A DNA stretch of 64,000 nt from Paramoeba atlantica (Eukaryota; Protista; Discosea): NCBI GenBank assembly GCA_977017575.1, contig CDRNVI010000056.1, forward strand, positions 372,001 through 436,000, read 5' to 3'. The position numbers and the translations under genes are program-made. Below the pieces are notes generated by a model. The model ran no database searches. It had not been told where the DNA came from and saw only the letters and a program-made list of their open reading frames with translations. Below are positions 7,209 to 61,760 of the stretch, piece after piece (within the stretch, counting starts at the first letter, position 1; each line of letters begins with the position of its first letter).

Positions 7209-8312
7209 ATGGCACATTTTTCAAACCTCCCTATTCCCGAAAAATCGTTTCCTGCGCAAGAGGCAAAACCTTTGCCTCCTTGTTTCACCTTTTCTTTTTG
7301 TTCTTCAACAACAACAACAGCAACGACTAAAAAACAATCTTTTAAAACGCAACCTACAAAACATATTCAGTGGTCACACAAACTGATTGGGAGCTCGACT
7401 GAAAAATTGCTGCCATCGCCGATTCACAAATCGCGCCTCTGGTGGGCACAAAAACAAAAAATTTGCTCTCGTCCTCAATCTGCAATTATTCCTTTAGCGG
7501 GTACAAAAGGCATCGTTCTTCGCTGTCCTGTTGGGGGAAGTGTCACGCTTTCCTTTGCCGCGCTCTCCCGTGATTTTTGTGACGAATGGATAAACGAAAG
7601 TCAACCGAATGTGAGGGGAGCGAAATCTCGGCGAACGCAAGTCGTAGAACTCGAACGAAGTCCCGTTTTAGCAAAAACACAAAAAGCCAAAGGCTTCCCG
7701 GTTTCGCCAATTTTTTCACCGGAAAAGACAAGTCCCCAACAGGATACACACAGAAAAACAAAATATAGGACTGGACGCAAAGTGCGACTTATGATTTCAC
7801 CTCTTTCTTCATTTCCGTCCAACGCACCACTTGAAGCGTACAACACAGCATCCTTTTCAAAACACGGCCATCGAGAAGAAACACAATCGAATTTTTCGTC
7901 TTCTTCGGACAGCTTTTCACCGGATGGGCGGGATTCTTTTTTTCGCCCACCTTCTTCTTTTTTTTCTTTTTCTTCTTCTTCATGTTCTTCAGTACCTCGT
8001 TCTTTTACTCTCGCTACCTTAACGGCACAACGCCCAAGCCAAGGTTTGTCTTTTTGCCTACCCCCAGGGTCGTATTCGGTGTATGGCATAAAATACAACG
8101 AGAGCAATCCGAGTCCAAACTCTGATTCTTCTTCTCAAGCTTTCGGTTCTCTAGAACGTTTCAAAAATAAAGAAAACTCGAAAATGGATTTTCGGGATTT
8201 CATAAAAACTAAAAGGAGAAGAAAACAACAAAAGGAAGAAAGCAGAGATTTCTCTTTTTCTGGTGTTTATCTTCAATGGAAACAGAAAGGTATTCGGGTG
8301 TATAATGCGTGA
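7209..8312 (+). CDS. Hypothetical Ser/Lys-rich low-complexity protein, 367 aa
   Basis: Long ATG-initiated ORF co-oriented with neighbours; no domain recognised. Confidence 0.5.
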   Translation: MAHFSNLPIPEKSFPAQEAKPLPPCFTFSFCSSTTTTATTKKQSFKTQPTKHIQWSHKLIGSSTEKLLPSPIHKSRLWWAQKQKICSRPQSAIIPLAGTKGIVLRCPVGGSVTLSFAALSRDFCDEWINESQPNVRGAKSRRTQVVELERSPVLAKTQKAKGFPVSPIFSPEKTSPQQDTHRKTKYRTGRKVRLMISPLSSFPSNAPLEAYNTASFSKHGHREETQSNFSSSSDSFSPDGRDSFFRPPSSFFSFSSSSCSSVPRSFTLATLTAQRPSQGLSFCLPPGSYSVYGIKYNESNPSPNSDSSSQAFGSLERFKNKENSKMDFRDFIKTKRRRKQQKEESRDFSFSGVYLQWKQKGIRVYNA

Positions 8313-26727: not shown

Positions 26728-29188
26728 TACCGTTACCCCCCCCTTACTTAGCCCCCACTTTTTGGCCCAAAACCCATACTTTGTGGTGAAGTAAGGGGGG
26801 GTGGGGGGGGGGGAAGTAAGGGGGGTGGTGAAGTAAGGGGGTGGTGAAGTAAGGGGGGTGGTGAAGTAAGGGGGGATTATTAAGTTGTCAAGTTCCTCCA
26901 GTAAAATCCTTATCGCCCGTCATGCTCACTTCAGGGTTGAACGAAACTTTCTGTTTCACGCTTGCCATAGTTCGGAAAGATCATTGACTTTATAAAATGA
27001 ATTAAAAGATCATTGACTTCTACAGAAAGTAACTAACATCATGAAAATACGCTACGCCCAAATTTAGTTTCTAATGTGCCGGCTTAAATATATAAAATAA
27101 TGACAGAAAATATGATACCTATAGAGGCTTTGCAAGGCACTAAGTAGAACCACAGAAAAACTTAGATACGACGAATATTAAAAACGGTGCTGTGGACGTA
27201 AAACGCTGGGGAAGGTGAGGTGCGCTAAGCCCCAACACTGCCGAAAATATATGCAGTGGCCCTGACCTGCGGCCATCGTTAGTGCTTTGCGCAGAAATTG
27301 TCACTCTCTTCCCCCTTTTCTTCAATTGCACACATGTGATGAAATTTCGTTAAACACCCAGGTTCACTACACTCGCGTAGAGTTAAATTCACTCGCGTGC
27401 AATAATAACACTCCTGTACTGGGGTTGCGTTAAGCGCTGAGTTCCTGTTACGCGCTGACTCTATCGCGGACTTCATGGCTTTCGCTGCGATTGTGGGACT
27501 AATTCGATTTTTTATAGGAACGCGCGTTGGCAGACGAGGGACCTGATTTGGTTCAAGAGATTCCTCGACAATGCTCAGTTGTGATACGCGTGAAGCGATG
27601 GCTGATGCATCCACCATCGATTCCGTGATAACGCTTGAGGAGAGTCTGAGCTCGGCTCTGGATTCTATGGGAATCTGTGCGAGATTTTTGGTAAGTGCTG
27701 GAACAAGCAACTTATTAAATTCGATTTCGTATTCTTCTGAATTCACTTTTGCCAGAGCCTGGGTGGCAAATTTTGTTATAAGACTTCGCGTCGGCCGGAC
27801 AATTTCATGATGCGTCGACGCACGCCATGAGGCAAAACACTCCTTGTAGTACTTTTTAAAAGGCTGGTTGATGGCCATATCCATGAGCTGTCCTTTGGAA
27901 GTGCAACCTCCTGGAACGAATTGAACATCGATTTTTCTCTCACGAAAGAACAATAATAATTCCGCTGTCCGATGAGCAGCGTACAGATCCAAAATAATAA
28001 GTGTCTTCCGCGGACGATACTTCATTCTGTCAAAGAATTCCGCTTCAGCCCATTTTTTAAATGACTCTCCTGTGTTCCACCCGCTTGTCGTTGTTGCCGT
28101 ACAATTGTACTTTTCTGCCGCCCGTAGCACCTCTTTGGAAACCTTCCCAGAATCTGAATGGGCTTCCCAAATTAAGTGCGGAGGAAACACCTTATGCTCC
28201 CACGTGCTTTCTGCATGTTGGTTCGTAACAGAGCGGCCCCAAAACCACGCAGTCAGTGTCTTCTTCTCCTTCCCTGTAGTTAAAACCTTTACACGCTTTG
28301 TCCCTTTAGTGTCGTATGTGATTTCATTGACGGGCTCCCACACAACACAGGTCTCAGACCACAATTTCGCAGAGCTATCATATTCAAAAAGGCTTCTATA
28401 CGCTCGTCCATGTCTTTTGGGACCATTTGGGTTGCTCCATTGACTCTTCGTCGCGAAATATTGGCGAAGGTGCAAAAACGAATCCAAAATTTTTCTTTTC
28501 CTTTGTCGGTAAGGGAACAGAAGTGCTCTGAAATTACAGCAAAGTACCCCAACATTGTCGGTTTCGTGACTGCCGAAAGAGACTCGCGTAGCAAAAGCAG
28601 TTGCGTCAACCCTTTTTCATATAATTCTTTATTTGCTCGGGGGGGATGATACTGAAACAATTTCCCGAAGCCAAGTTGAGTAAATTTATGCCAATCTTCT
28701 TTTTTCCGATAAACTCTATGAACCGTGCTTACCTCGACCTTGTAATCTCGGGCGGCCACGCTTACAGACTTGCCGGCATCTATACTAGCACATAGGTTGT
28801 TTTTTTGCTGTATGGTAAGATCCACCCGAACCTTCCGCGGCTGCTCAGCAAGCTGGTTAGATGCATTCAATATTAATGTGGTGGATGGCGTAGCTGAAGT
28901 ATCATCGGGGAAGGGCAGTACGGCAACAGTTTCGTGTGGCAACGGTGAGGATAGAGTCACTTGGCTCGCGTTAAAGAATAGAAGTGGTGGGGCCATCGTG
29001 TATTGAATAAATATTGAAATCAATGAAAATTTACAGTTTCTGACCTGGGTTAACTATCATCACAGAGTAGGAATCGGGGGAAAATTCTGGCACCCCCCTT
29101 ACTTCACCACATACGGAGTGGCTAAATGTGGTGAAGTAAGGGGGGAGGTGAAGTAAGGGGGGAGGTGAAGTAAAGGGGGGTAACGGTA
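26728..29188 (-). mobile_element. pogo-like (Tc1/mariner superfamily) DNA transposon
   Basis: TIRs TA|CCGTTA(C)6-8TTACTT at both ends, arrays of GGTGAAGTAAGGGGGG subterminal repeats, internal transposase. Confidence 0.88.
27279..29023 (-). pseudogene. Frameshifted pogo/DDE_1 transposase with N-terminal CENP-B-like HTHs and C-terminal PHD-like finger
   Basis: HTH ORF 29023-28289 shifts into the catalytic ORF near 28370 (ETCVVW..TY..KG.K.V.V.TTG.EK; LILDLYAAH; PGGCTSKGQLMD, with 35 residues between the last two Asp); ends C..C...C...C...FHHMC...FC..H. Confidence 0.85.
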
Positions 29189-29801: not shown

Positions 29802-31998
29802 CGTTTTTCGTAAACCCCATCGTCTTTGGTAAGACCATCGTTTTTAGTAATTATCGTTTTTGGTAAGACTATTGCTTTTGGTAAGACCATCGCTTTGGTA
29901 AAACCATCGTCTTTTGCAGGAATATCATCTTTTGTAAGACCATCGCTTTTGGTAGGACCATCACTTTTTATAAGAGCATCCTTTTTGGTACGCCCATCGT
30001 TTTTGGTAAGACCATCGTTTTTGGTAAGACCTTTTTTGGTAAGACCATCGTTTTTGGTAAGACCATCGTTTTTTGTAAGACCATCGCTTTTGGTAAACCA
30101 TCGTTTTTGGTAAGATCATCGCTTTTGGTAAGACCATTGTTTTTGGTAAGACCATCGTTTTTCGTAAGCCCATCGTTTTTTGCAAGACCATCGTTTTTGG
30201 TAACACCATCGTTTTTTGTAAGACCATCGTTTTTGGTAAACCATCGTTTTTGGTAAGACCATCGTTTTTGGCAAGACCATCGGTTTTGGTAAGACCATCG
30301 TTTTTGGTAAACCATAGTTTTTGATAAGACCATCGTTTTTGGTAAGATCATCGCTTTTGGTAAGACCATTGTTTTTGGTAAGACCATCGTTTTTCGTAAG
30401 CCCATCGTTTTTTGCAAGACCATCGTTTTTGGTAACACCATCGTTTTTTGTAAGACCATCGTTTTTGGTAAACCATCGTTTTTGGTAAGACCATCGTTTT
30501 TGGCAAGACCATCGGTTTTGGTAAGACCATCGTTTTTGGTAAACCATAGTTTTTGATAAGACCATCGTTTTTGGTAAACCATGGTTTTTGATAAGACCAT
30601 CGTTTTTGGTAAGACCATTTTTTTTTGGTAAGACCATCGTTCTTGGTAACACCATCGTTTTTTGTAAGACCATCGTTTTTTGTAAGACCATCGTTTTTGG
30701 TAAGACCTTCGTTTTTAGTAAGCATCGTTTTTGTTAAGACCATTCCTTTTGGTAACACCATCGTTTTTGGTAAGATCATCGCTTTTGGTAAACCATCGTT
30801 TTAGGTAGGATTATCGGTTTTGGTAAGACCATCGTTTTTGGTAAGACCATCGTTTTTCGTAAGCCCATCGTTTTTTGCAAGACCATCGTTTTTGGTAACA
30901 CCATCGTTTTTTGTAAGACCATCGTTTTTGGTAACACCATCGTTTTTTGTAAGACCATCGCTTTTGGTAAACCATCGTTTTTGGTAAGATCATCGCTTTT
31001 GGTAAGACCATCGTTTTTGGTAAGACCATCGTTTTTCGTAGGCCCATCGTTTTTTGCAAGACCATCGTTTTTGGTAACACCATCGTTTTTTGTAAGACCA
31101 TCGTTTTTTGCAAGACCATCGTTTTTGGTAACACCATCGTTTTTAGTAAGCATCGTTTTTGGTAACACCATCGTTTTTTGTAAGACCATCGTTTTTGGTA
31201 AACCATCGTTTTTGGTAAGACCATCGTTTTTGGTAACACCATCGGTTTTGGTAAGACCATCGTTTTTGGTAAACCATAGTTTTTGGTAAGACCATCGTTT
31301 TTGGTAAACCATCGTTTTTGATAAGGCCATCGTTTTTGGTAAGACCATCGTTTTTGGTAAGACCATCGTTTTTGGTAAGACCATCGTTCTTGGTAACACC
31401 ATCGTTTTTTGTAAGACCATCGTTTTTTGTAAGACCATCGTTTTTGGTAAGACCATCGTTTTTAGTAAGCATCGTTTTTGGTAAGACCATCGTTTTTAGT
31501 AAGGATCGTTTTTGTTAAGACCATTCCTTTTGGTAACACCATCGTTTTTGGTAAGACCATCGTTTTTGGTAAGACCATCGTTTTTGGTAAGATCATCGGT
31601 TTTGGTAACACCATCGTTTTTGGTAAGACCATCGTTTTTTGTAAGACCATCGTTTTTGGTAAGACCATCGTTTTAATAAGCATCGTTTTTGGTAAGACCA
31701 TCGTTTTTGGTAAACCATCGTTTTTCGTAAGCCCATCATTTTTGGTAACATCATCGTTTTTTGTAAAACCATCGTTTTTGGTAAACCATCGTTTTTGGTA
31801 AGACCATCGTTTTTGGTAAGACCATCGTTTTTGGTAAACCATCGTTTTTTGCAAGACCATCGTTTTTGGTAACACCATCGTTTTTGGTAAGCCCATCGTT
31901 TTTGGTAAAACCAACGCTTTTTATAAGACCATCGTTTTTGGTAAGACCATTGCTGTTGAGAAGCCATCGTTTTTCGTAACATCATCTTTTTTGGTAGG
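29802..31998. repeat. 18-bp satellite (TTGGTAAGACCATCGTTT)n, roughly 120 monomers
   Basis: Continuous tandem monomers with 17-bp variants; a locally visible 232-bp higher-order repeat. Confidence 0.97.
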
Positions 31999-58626: not shown

Positions 58627-58707
58627 GCGTCCATACCCAAGTGGTTAAGGGGCCTGACTTGAAATCAGGTGTGTTCTCAGGCGCAGGTTCGAACCCTGCT
58701 GGGCGCG
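58627..58707 (+). tRNA. tRNA-Ser(UGA), copy 18, variable-arm variant
   Basis: Variable arm TGTGTTCTCAGGC instead of TGTGTTCTCACGC; otherwise intact. Confidence 0.88.
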
Positions 58708-59503
58708 TTTTTGCGATTCTCTTCGTTCACAATCGTGTGGCCGCTTTTGGGCGCGCGCGAGAGACGCAACGTGAATCGCAGAAGCAATGGTACATTTTAG
58801 GGTATTTTCTTTGCTGAAATGAAGTCTTTTTGGCCTGTGTAGCAGATGACGTTTTGGCGGCAGAGACGGTGAATGGGTAGATGGCCGTGCGCGTGTCAAA
58901 TGTAAAAGCCCGAAAAGTGTACCGCTTTTTAGCGCATCATATCTTAAAATTCAAAATGACGTCAGATTTACCTCTTTCCGCCTGCACGGTGAAGGGGGGT
59001 TTTCAGATATCTCTGGACGCGACGTTTGCATGACTTCCGTGCATGGCGTGCGTCGATTGCGAAACGCCGAACCAGCAAGCTACACCTCCTGAGTGGTCGT
59101 GCTTCGCGCGATATTTTCTGTAGAGATAGAGTTTTTCCGTTAGTCAGTATGATTGCGAAACAAAACGTGGGTTTCGCCAGTCCACTTTTTGTCCGTTCTT
59201 CCCTGAATCAAATCTTAAACAATTTTAACCCTTTCTAATTGATGAGCGTTCTGATCGCTCGTGCTTTGCTCTGATATTTGCTTTGGGCACTCTTTTCACA
59301 TGATTTCACTGATACTATAAGACTTCCCCTCTTCTAACGCAAGAATTTGTTGTCATCGGACATTCTTTTAGTCAAATCAATGCTTGATTGCACAAGCTTC
59401 CTGCATCTCAAGGGGGGGGGTTGTATTTCTCTACACCTCTTTCACTTTTCACCTGCTCTTCCAAGCAACAGGGTCACAGGGCGCGCGCGTATTGTAATAG
59501 TGT

Positions 59504-61000
59504 CTTGTTGACTCTTACCGCTATCTGGGAAACATTCAGGATTCAGGCGTTTCTTCGCCAGTAAAAGACCGCTTAAGGCTCACCTGGGCCGCATTTCGGA
59601 AGCTCAAGGGCATTTGGGACTCGCCACTGAGTGCATCAACAAAACTGCGTTTGTTTGATTGCCTCGTTTACCCAATCATGACCTTTGGTGCCGCTTCGCT
59701 TTCCATATCCAACAAAATGCTTCGGCAAACAGAAGTTGAGCTCAATATGATGCGAAGATTTTGCTGTAATTGTGCTAAATTGGACGAGTTTGGACACTGC
59801 TACCCTATCGAGTCACTTTATTGCGGCACTCCTCGTTTCTCCACCGTACATCGCGTTAGTCGGGCTAAAATTGTTGGTCACATTCTAAGGCACTCATTCA
59901 TGTTTCGAGATCTTATCCAGTGGAAATGCAGCGATAGGAAACGAAATCTCTCACCAAGCGAAGCTTGCTTTCACGATCTGGACATTACCGAAGAACAAGC
60001 CCTCGTATACGCTCAGGATCGAGATCACTGGAAAAAGTTATGTGAAGATTTAAAGGTAGCACTCGAACCGCTTCCGGATTACGAAAGACTCTCTTCTCCT
60101 AGATGGAAAAGTAAACATGCCCACGCCTTGAAGCAAGATACGCCTTACGATTTGCAATTTGTCGAAGAAAGTTCTGATCCTTTTCCATTAAAAGATGATG
60201 AGGTTCACTTCTATATTGATGGTTCAGTCCGTGCCTTGCGGGTGACAAACGAGATCAGAGCAGGTGCTGGAATTGTTGTGCTTCAACGATGGACAACCGA
60301 TAAATGTTTTTCCTTAACATTAGATGTTGATAGTGCCGAGCAAGCTGAGGCTGAATCTTTTCGAGAGGCGCTTAAAAGAATACCGGACGGAGCAAAAGAT
60401 ATCGTAGTACACACAGATTCGTTCTATGTGTGGAACTTCTTTCATCACGTTCGCATCCGGAGACGGGTAATAGGGTATGACCGCGTCGTCAACAGAAACA
60501 TTCTACAAGATATAGATCATCAGGTGCGGAAACTAAAATCTCAGAATGTTAATTTGTATGTGTGCAAAGTTAAATCTCATAATGGGAACGAATATAACGA
60601 CAAAGCTGATGTCTTGGCTCTTTCGGCGTCACGAAGGCCGTTAAAATCACAAGAGGCAAAGAGGTTGAAGACGACAAAAGCTCCTTCTTCTTCTTCTTCT
60701 GACCCAATATCCTCGCCAGAAGCGACACTCATATTGCGCCCAAGAAGGAATGTTGACACTATTTCATCCAAACGCAAGAATAACACTACTGCAAGTGGGG
60801 CTCTATCCAAAAAGGGTAGCTCACTGTCTGGAGAGCCTGGAGTGAAACCGTCTGAAAAAACGAATGCTATGATCCTGAGTAGGCCTGATGTCGGTAAAGA
60901 AAAAAGTTGCAAGGGAAATAGGGAGTCTGATAAGATCGTGGAAACAAAGGGAAAGAAGTCTCCCAAGAGAAAGAAGGCTTCACGAAAATTAGAACAGTAG
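59504..61000 (+). CDS. Partial retrotransposon ORF: RT thumb region, RNase H, basic tail
   Basis: Frame open from the junction: LVDSYRYLG...RLTWAAFRKLKGIWDSPLSASTKLRLFDCLVYPIMTFG; RNase H motifs YIDGS, AEAES, HTDS, KVKSHNGNEYNDKAD; no start codon of its own. Confidence 0.9.
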   Translation, partial: LVDSYRYLGNIQDSGVSSPVKDRLRLTWAAFRKLKGIWDSPLSASTKLRLFDCLVYPIMTFGAASLSISNKMLRQTEVELNMMRRFCCNCAKLDEFGHCYPIESLYCGTPRFSTVHRVSRAKIVGHILRHSFMFRDLIQWKCSDRKRNLSPSEACFHDLDITEEQALVYAQDRDHWKKLCEDLKVALEPLPDYERLSSPRWKSKHAHALKQDTPYDLQFVEESSDPFPLKDDEVHFYIDGSVRALRVTNEIRAGAGIVVLQRWTTDKCFSLTLDVDSAEQAEAESFREALKRIPDGAKDIVVHTDSFYVWNFFHHVRIRRRVIGYDRVVNRNILQDIDHQVRKLKSQNVNLYVCKVKSHNGNEYNDKADVLALSASRRPLKSQEAKRLKTTKAPSSSSSDPISSPEATLILRPRRNVDTISSKRKNNTTASGALSKKGSSLSGEPGVKPSEKTNAMILSRPDVGKEKSCKGNRESDKIVETKGKKSPKRKKASRKLEQ

Positions 61001-61051
61001 TATCTTTAATCGGTTTTTAACCGATCTATTAGGATAGGATAGGATAGGAGG
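59504..61051 (+). mobile_element. 5'-truncated non-LTR retrotransposon (RTE-like RT C-terminus plus RNase H) inserted in one array unit
   Basis: 1,548 bp absent from all other units; flanked by a 13-bp duplication ATTGTAATAGTGT (59491-59503, 61052-61064); (TAGGA)4 tail. Confidence 0.95.
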
Positions 61052-61679
61052 ATTGTAATAGTGTGGTGGAAAAACGTCGGTTTCACACGAAACTCGCATC
61101 CACCGTGCGACCCCATTCCGTGGAGAACGATCTTTGTTTTCTTCGATCGCACTGATTCCGTTAGATGCACAGAGCGTGATTTCACGTGAATCGAACAATT
61201 CCGCGAGATGTTTTACTTGGGGCAAAGCAGGGCAGCACATGAACAATGAAAACAGGACGCGCAATGGCGCGGAACACCTTCCACGTGACACCTTCCGAAA
61301 CGCGTTCTGCACAATCCAGGTATAAAACAACGAATTTCTTCGCCCGGCCGTTGCAAAGACCCACCCCTTACCGATAGATTTCGTAGCTCTGCTCTAAACG
61401 TGAACGCATCGTGCTCAACCTCTCTTCCCGACTATGTCATCGCAAAAATTGTATGTGTCACTTCTGGGCCGTTCGCATGGGCATGTGTTGGGCACACTCA
61501 AACCCCCATTGCATTCATCAATGCGACCTACGGTTGTGAATGTCGCCTTGCTTGGGGGGGGGGGGGGGCTGTAAGGATCGTTAAGCGAGCGAAATCGGGG
61601 AGTTTCCATTATGACATGAATTAGCAAGGTAAAGTGCACCGCTATGGACACACAAAATTCGAGACACACCACGACGGAA

Positions 61680-61760
61680 GCGTCCATACCCAAGTGGTTA
61701 AGGGGCCTGACTTGAAATCAGGTGTGTTCTCACGCGCAGGTTCGAACCCTGCTGGGCGCG
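61680..61760 (+). tRNA. tRNA-Ser(UGA), copy 19
   Basis: Identical to copy 1. Confidence 0.95.

Follow-up and report, generated by a model that had tools for sequence, protein, structure and literature searches.

A 5'-truncated RTE-like LINE with an RNase H domain, inserted in a tRNA-Ser gene array of a Paramoeba atlantica assembly and spread through the array units

How a piece of a retrotransposon that lacks long terminal repeats (a non-LTR element) came to lie inside a tandem array of tRNA genes, and to which lineage of elements it belongs, are the questions raised by this locus. We analysed a window of 64,000 nt (positions 372,001 to 436,000 of contig CDRNVI010000056.1, here C56) from the Paramoeba atlantica assembly GCA_977017575.1; coordinates are positions in this window unless a contig (C) or locus (L) is named, and copies were sought in the window's own 45.7-Mb assembly. 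One unit of an array of tRNA-Ser(UGA) genes carries, at 59504-61051 on the forward strand, the 5'-truncated end of a long interspersed nuclear element (LINE), 1,548 bp in length. We put at roughly 80% the probability that an autonomous RTE-like element of ~4.56 kb, equipped with an RNase H domain, inserted here once by target-primed reverse transcription and was then amplified together with the array.

The array occupies 32025-64000 on the forward strand in units of ~1,491 bp, each with one tRNA gene. ARAGORN identified 20 tRNA-Ser(UGA) genes in the window, which follow one another at intervals of ~1,491 bp between 33.3 kb and the window end; the first unit, at ~32,025, is degenerate, and the array continues past the window to ~C56:437807. 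Spacing between units is 1,485-1,492 bp, with a single unit of 1,456 bp. The median pairwise identity of the empty units in the window is 99.7%, which fits ongoing homogenisation. An assembly search found the array on C56, C96 and C106 only.

The insert lies between the tRNA-Ser(UGA) genes at 58627-58707 and 61680-61760 (both forward strand, ARAGORN), with its insertion point 783 bp from the nearest tRNA end. It is flanked by an exact 13-bp target-site duplication (TSD), ATTGTAATAGTGT, at 59491-59503 upstream and 61052-61064 downstream. This 13-mer occurs once in each array unit, giving 21 matches in the window where 0 would be expected by chance. At 19 of the 21 occurrences the site is empty, has identical flanks and is followed by the same spacer sequence; solely the pair at 59491-59503 and 61052-61064 brackets foreign DNA. 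A sequence-only reading of the window had described a 1,548-bp insert with a perfect 13-bp TSD and a frame open from the first base, placed 864 bp after one tRNA start (58627) and with its downstream duplication ending 616 bp before the next (61680). The 13-mer matches, the tRNA positions and the translation confirm these particulars, and the view that this is a recent product of 5'-truncated retrotransposition also holds.

The reading frame of the insert is open from base 1 for 498 codons, equivalent to residues 986-1483 of the full open reading frame (ORF), and ends with a TAG at 60998-61000. Translation shows that it begins with the post-catalytic, C-terminal part of the reverse transcriptase (RT) and a linker (59504-60199), starting 64 aa after the YADD motif. 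A DUF6451-like motif lies within this part at ~59591-59659 (a weak match to Pfam PF20049, E=0.0017, below the cut-off). There follow a type-1 RNase H with a complete D-E-D-H-D set (60200-60628, Pfam PF00075) and a C-terminal tail that is by composition rich in Lys/Arg and Ser/Thr and has no zinc finger (60629-60997). The stop codon and short 3' untranslated region (UTR) span 60998-61029, with a 7-bp hairpin at 61009-61025, and the insert is completed at 61030-61051 by a (TAGGA)n tail that has GG at its end and lacks poly(A). All of these parts read on the forward strand. The insert thus represents the 3' third of a ~4.56-kb non-LTR retrotransposon, and since a start at residue 986 leaves out the polymerase active site, this copy is unable to move on its own. 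The whole 1,548 bp is matched at 98-100% identity on several contigs, and the copies on C7, C43 and C87 are 99.3-99.6% identical to it at their 3' ends (6-11 differences over ~1,546 positions).

The filled unit had been taken for a lone one, and this did not stand. At least 14 further units, 8 on C96 and 6 on C106, hold the same insertion with the same TSD and the same truncation base, so that filled units total at least 15 on three contigs (C56, C96 and C106). On C96 a single empty unit is interposed at two places among the filled ones, and on C106 the 6 filled units stand in a row in the part that was read; for C106:1-20881, the end of C56 and the sister-subfamily loci the genome search supplied coordinates and not letters. 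The 13 complete copies share their first base, their 13-bp TSD and their length, with 2 single-nucleotide polymorphisms in all over 13 x 1,548 bp. Separate retrotransposition events would not break off at one and the same nucleotide, so all of the array copies go back to one event: a single insertion, followed by spread of the 3,052-bp filled unit by what we infer to have been recombination within the array. The insertion itself is ordinary, and what sets the locus apart is a dead retrotransposon fragment multiplied ~15-fold via tandem-array recombination rather than by transposition. The insert also tags array units and could be used to follow their turnover.

Tandem arrays are difficult to assemble, and the insert might be suspected to be a LINE fragment mis-joined into the array during assembly. 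We consider this the least credible of the alternatives, given that an exact 13-bp duplication of array sequence is a signature of biological insertion and that identical junctions are seen 15 times over, spread across three contigs. Exaptation would offer a different account of the multiplication, in which the truncated ORF has become a host RNase H gene and its amplification reflects selection for dosage. The copies, however, are too young for an open frame to signal selection, even though the frame is open in 13 of the 13 complete copies and none of the RNase H catalytic residues has been lost. Expression of an internal ORF is conceivable in a trans-splicing host, yet this one begins inside the RT region, after YADD, and has no dedicated start codon. 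Hitchhiking with array recombination accounts for the amplification, and we find a host function scarcely credible. A scan of the filled unit for promoter and terminator consensus sequences returned nothing useful.

The sequence-only reading had also proposed that the element may favour this multicopy repeat as a safe harbour. If the element were site-specific, the 15 filled units would be independent insertions at one exact site, and LINEs that target multicopy genes, tRNA genes included, do exist (PMC4640811). The single truncation base, TSD and tail length found throughout, with 2 polymorphisms among the 13 complete copies, argue instead for one event, and the family is found elsewhere at no fewer than five independent loci (on C7, C29, C43, C87 and C1), all with unrelated flanks, the very observation that the sequence-only reading had named as speaking against targeting. 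The C29 copy has its own 12-bp duplication, ATTGAGTTTTTA, and the C7 copy its own 10-bp duplication, AATCACCCTT. A genome search placed 0 of ~30 copies of the sister subfamily on the array contigs. We therefore regard targeting of the array as very improbable, and the locus cautions that copy number or a shared site is poor evidence of it. Dictyostelium TRE and the yeast elements Ty3 and Ty1 insert a set, short distance away from tRNA genes of many different kinds. The present insert resembles the tRNA-gene-associated Dictyostelium TRE elements in lying between tRNA genes and differs from them in that a single event, at 783 bp from the nearest tRNA end, is seen in a family whose remaining copies lie outside the array. 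All three duplications have AT or AAT as their first bases, a hint of some loose preference at the nick site, although three sites are too few to say.

The 5' junction of the C7 copy (L037 3925-3952) has ~12 extra bases between the upstream duplication and the truncated element, and together with the target these form the palindrome TCACCCT TTATA AGGGTGA, possibly a product of snap-back at second-strand synthesis.

Full-length master copies of the element exist in the genome. The search recovered on C43 a copy of ~4.56 kb with an intact single ORF of 1,483 aa, and near-identical copies on C87, C29, C1 and C7. There are two copies on C87, within a segmental duplicate, one of them split by a 3.5-kb nested insert; those on C29 and C1 are also split by nested inserts, and the C7 copy is 5'-truncated at 3.6 kb. 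The C43 ORF encodes an apurinic-type (APE) endonuclease (Exo_endo_phos, residues 191-443) in which the QET, GDFN and LDHI motifs are present, and a reverse transcriptase (RVT_1, residues 732-994) with YADD at 922. The RNase H noted earlier from the insert alone is a genuine one: scanned alone, its segment matches PF00075 at E=1e-14 (55.3 bits vs a cut-off of 25.8), and the D-E-D-H-D residues do not vary among members of the lineage and three RNase HI-like proteins (alignment A1). K+R make up 23% and S+T 20% of the ORF's last 143 aa, which hold one Cys and one His, and neither a C-terminal zinc finger nor an NPGP (2A) motif was found in the 1,483 aa.

The ends of the element are equally distinctive. 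The 3'UTR is 29 nt long and holds the 7-bp hairpin, after which comes (TAGGA)n. Dispersed copies and the sister subfamily share this simple tail, with copies ending in TAGGA or GGA repeats, and poly(A) was absent from all copies examined. In the sister subfamily (76% protein identity) a hairpin of other sequence occupies the same place before the same tail. The 5'UTR consists of 18-bp tandem repeats in two to >20 copies, ending ~20 nt before the ATG. In the C43 copy (L038 5520-5905) the monomer AAGAACACACTTTTTATA is present in >20 tandem copies before the intact ORF, and the C87 copies have ~2.3 copies of it. Sister subfamilies in the genome stand at 60-67% and 51% protein identity, with many intact ORFs of ~1,535 aa.

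A conserved domain of ~125 aa lies at the N-terminus, at residues ~40-125 of the C43 ORF (L038; alignment A2). Its pattern, V.VVW...W.GTV...Y...PFPP, is kept across the lineage, including in relatives without RNase H, and in some fragments a domain of this type is also positioned after RNase H. A Pfam scan of the domain gave no match. Its AlphaFold 2 model is a confident five-stranded barrel, for which the matches in the PDB were weak (Z <=6.1) and included Tudor, chromo, KOW and Sm-like barrels. A part in chromatin or RNA binding is possible.

Protein searches with the RT region returned public matches in three tiers. The first comprises proteins from a metagenome assembly at 69-76% identity, and the second APE+RT+RNase H proteins from metagenomes at 40-48%. 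The third, at 30-38% identity with E-values down to 1e-57, includes many APE+RT proteins of ~1,000 aa on contigs of 3.2-3.6 kb; several proteins of this tier have Pfam DUF6451, some come from amphioxus, and close kin of one were found in rotifers, coral, fish and a ctenophore. The homologues in amphioxus, rotifers, coral, fish and ctenophore are named only as 'uncharacterized' proteins. RT similarity to I-like LINEs with RNase H was about 1e-10, vs 1e-57 for the RTE-like proteins. DUF6451 spans exactly the AWAAF..KL..IW motif picked out in the sequence-only reading. A literature search found no mention of DUF6451, and likewise no paper when RTE, RNase H and Euglenozoa were combined. Sequence searches of the PDB returned R2 and L1 RTs and one weak RNase H match only, and the ESM Atlas gave only generic RT+RNase H clusters, with scores below 0.9.

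A maximum-likelihood tree of 78 RT domains (LG+G4; support as ultrafast bootstrap / SH-like approximate likelihood-ratio test, SH-aLRT), rooted on three CRE-like elements of the same genome, places the family in a clade of 14 rows, 12 of which have RNase H (support 100/99). This clade is nested within successively larger ones of 17 (100/99), 21 (100/99), 32 (98/97) and 38 rows (97/98). The 21-row clade includes transcripts of the kinetoplastid Apiculatamorpha, and the larger nested clades also contain APE+RT proteins of ~1,000 aa, some with DUF6451. L1-like and I-like groups are separate from the family. The RTE-like pattern named in the sequence-only reading is thus upheld as a resemblance, through the ~1,000-aa relatives with DUF6451 and the nesting of the RT away from I-like LINEs.

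In the tree of RNase H domains the lineage is monophyletic (99/97) and the RNase H of I-like LINEs forms a separate clade (95/95), with an unresolved backbone. A HMMER search with the RNase H domain against 1.84 billion representatives found 75 proteins at E<=0.001. The best matches were fragments and full-length members of the same lineage, with RNase HI-like proteins scoring worse (E 1e-4 to 1e-6), and for this reason we take the domain to be an old part of the lineage and not a recent capture. Five named LINE proteins occur among the 75: P0006, P0008 and P0012 belong to the lineage, P0188 is a fragment with its N-terminal domain, and P0227 has RNase H in mid-protein. The six I-like LINEs of the tree set were all absent from these 75 matches.

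To what known group, then, does the family belong? RTE elements encode APE and RT in one ORF, lack RNase H, carry a simple repeat in a short 3'UTR and have no sequence-specific target, and they often leave 5'-truncated copies that keep the RT end, with flanking duplications of variable length (PMC2887409). The present family resembles RTE-1, BovB, SR2/SR3 and the lepidopteran RTEs in its one ORF with N-terminal APE followed by RT and in its very short 3'UTR, which closes with a simple repeat where poly(A) might be expected. Its nearest relatives without RNase H are proteins of ~1,000 aa on contigs of 3.2-3.6 kb, among which its RT nests. It is unlike RTE in having a type-1 RNase H after the RT, the ~125-aa N-terminal barrel and the long basic tail, and in its size of 4.56 kb vs the compact ~3.2-3.5 kb of RTE. 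From these sequence comparisons, the RTE-like label appears well supported as a resemblance, and we consider a family of this build to be moderately novel. Proto1 and Proto2 are names of protist elements, and Proto2 has been grouped with RTE. A list from 2015 gives the LINE clades with RNase H as the I group, plant L1, Proto1 and Dualen, and does not name RTE (PMC4640811); compared by description, our family is like Proto1 in having RNase H. At about even odds, the family may represent an unclassified branch of the RTE group that gained a type-1 RNase H independently of the I group, has its own N-terminal barrel, diversified in a euglenozoan and is present in many environmental protists. If so, the RTE group, which has been described as being without RNase H, would join the LINE groups that acquired it, as one more independent gain, and the LINE repertoire of Euglenozoa would be wider than CRE and ingi.

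The family could alternatively be a divergent member of the kinetoplastid ingi/L1Tc clade of the I group. Elements of that clade have a C-terminal zinc finger. They share with the family the order APE-RT-RNase H in one ORF, duplications of ~12 bp (12-13 bp in the family) and a euglenozoan host, and they have a poly(A) tail and a 77-nt 5' signature, Pr77 (PMC12278014), besides a 2A peptide (PMC3708506). One report, with the data not shown there, places ingi in a free-living kinetoplastid (PMC4728078), and our RT tree covered I-like but no ingi sequences. The tail of the family is nevertheless (TAGGA)n and not poly(A), both NPGP and the C-terminal zinc finger are missing, and the 18-bp tandem repeats stand directly before the ATG. 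The gap in RT similarity between RTE-like proteins and I-like RNase H LINEs points the same way, as does the absence of the six I-like tree LINEs from the RNase H matches. A constraint uniting the family with the I-like RNase H LINEs cost 135 log-likelihood units and was rejected by the approximately unbiased (AU) test (p-AU 3.9e-7), for a group that was chosen once the tree had been seen. Membership of the ingi/L1Tc clade is therefore improbable.

Our preferred account, a single insertion of an RTE-like element followed by amplification in the array, would run as follows. The source element belongs to a lineage of RTE-like LINEs with a type-1 RNase H and an N-terminal barrel, represented by several subfamilies in the genome and by relatives in metagenomes. 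The APE endonuclease of the element would have nicked the array spacer, and the RT would have primed on the element RNA's 3' end, with its hairpin and then (TAGGA)n. Copying would have halted at codon 986, so that only the post-catalytic RT C-terminus, RNase H, basic tail and 3'UTR were integrated, and a staggered second-strand cleavage would have produced the 13-bp duplication. Unequal crossing-over or gene conversion may then have multiplied the 3,052-bp filled unit to at least 15 units.

Several points count against this account. The junctions are known from assembled contigs, and C96 and C106 may belong to one array, may be alleles or may in part be products of the assembly. The folding energy of the 3' hairpin is no better than that of shuffled sequence (z=-0.28). 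The basis for the term 'RTE-like' is how unnamed relatives are built and what the tail looks like, and not curated RTs of RTE, RTEX, Proto1, Proto2 or ingi, and the late choice of the group weakens the AU test.

Other repeats lie close to the array and to copies of the family. A 2.2-kb satellite with an 18-bp unit, GTAAGACCATCGTTTTTG, at 29817-31996 abuts the degenerate first tRNA unit. In the sister LINE subfamily the tandem 5'UTR repeats (L043 2800-2985) are built from a near-identical 18-mer. On C12, C21 and C30 such repeats immediately adjoin the 5' side of sister-family ORFs, and on C1 they lie ~320 bp from an N-terminally incomplete match. The 18-bp pattern has 978 matches genome-wide, with long arrays on C56 and C72. 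The LINE 5' monomers and the 18-bp satellite share an origin.

The C29 copy contains a 616-bp nested insert (L041, oriented 7658-8273) that starts with ...ACAGTTTCTGTACCTTGTTG, followed by GTAC. We take ACAGTTTCTGTACCTTGTTG to resemble the 3' part of a kinetoplastid or diplonemid spliced leader (SL), with GT(AC) as the intron start, and this resemblance suggests that the insert is a retrocopy of, or a short interspersed nuclear element derived from, SL RNA. CRE/R2-like elements adjoin or are nested in LINE copies at L039 5462-7891, L034 3-2504 and L042 6770-8548 (all on the reverse strand); in these elements the RT precedes a Cys/His knuckle and a motif of restriction-like endonuclease type, and they served as the outgroup of the RT tree.

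Just upstream of the satellite and array, an ORF on the reverse strand at 27279-28487 encodes a DDE_1 transposase domain together with a PHD-like zinc finger. In the wider assembly, the top-scoring tRNA matches (scores covered 63 of the 3,406 tRNA candidates) are concentrated on a few contigs, C137-C185, and from this clustering the assembly may also include bacterial contigs. The sequence-only reading had set the insert against LINEs of kinetoplastids; the host is probably an uncultured protist of euglenozoan type. Among the window's genes, a conserved one for PIP5K finds a 98% match in a metagenome assembly, and the best of the named matches is a Euglena transcript, at 31%.

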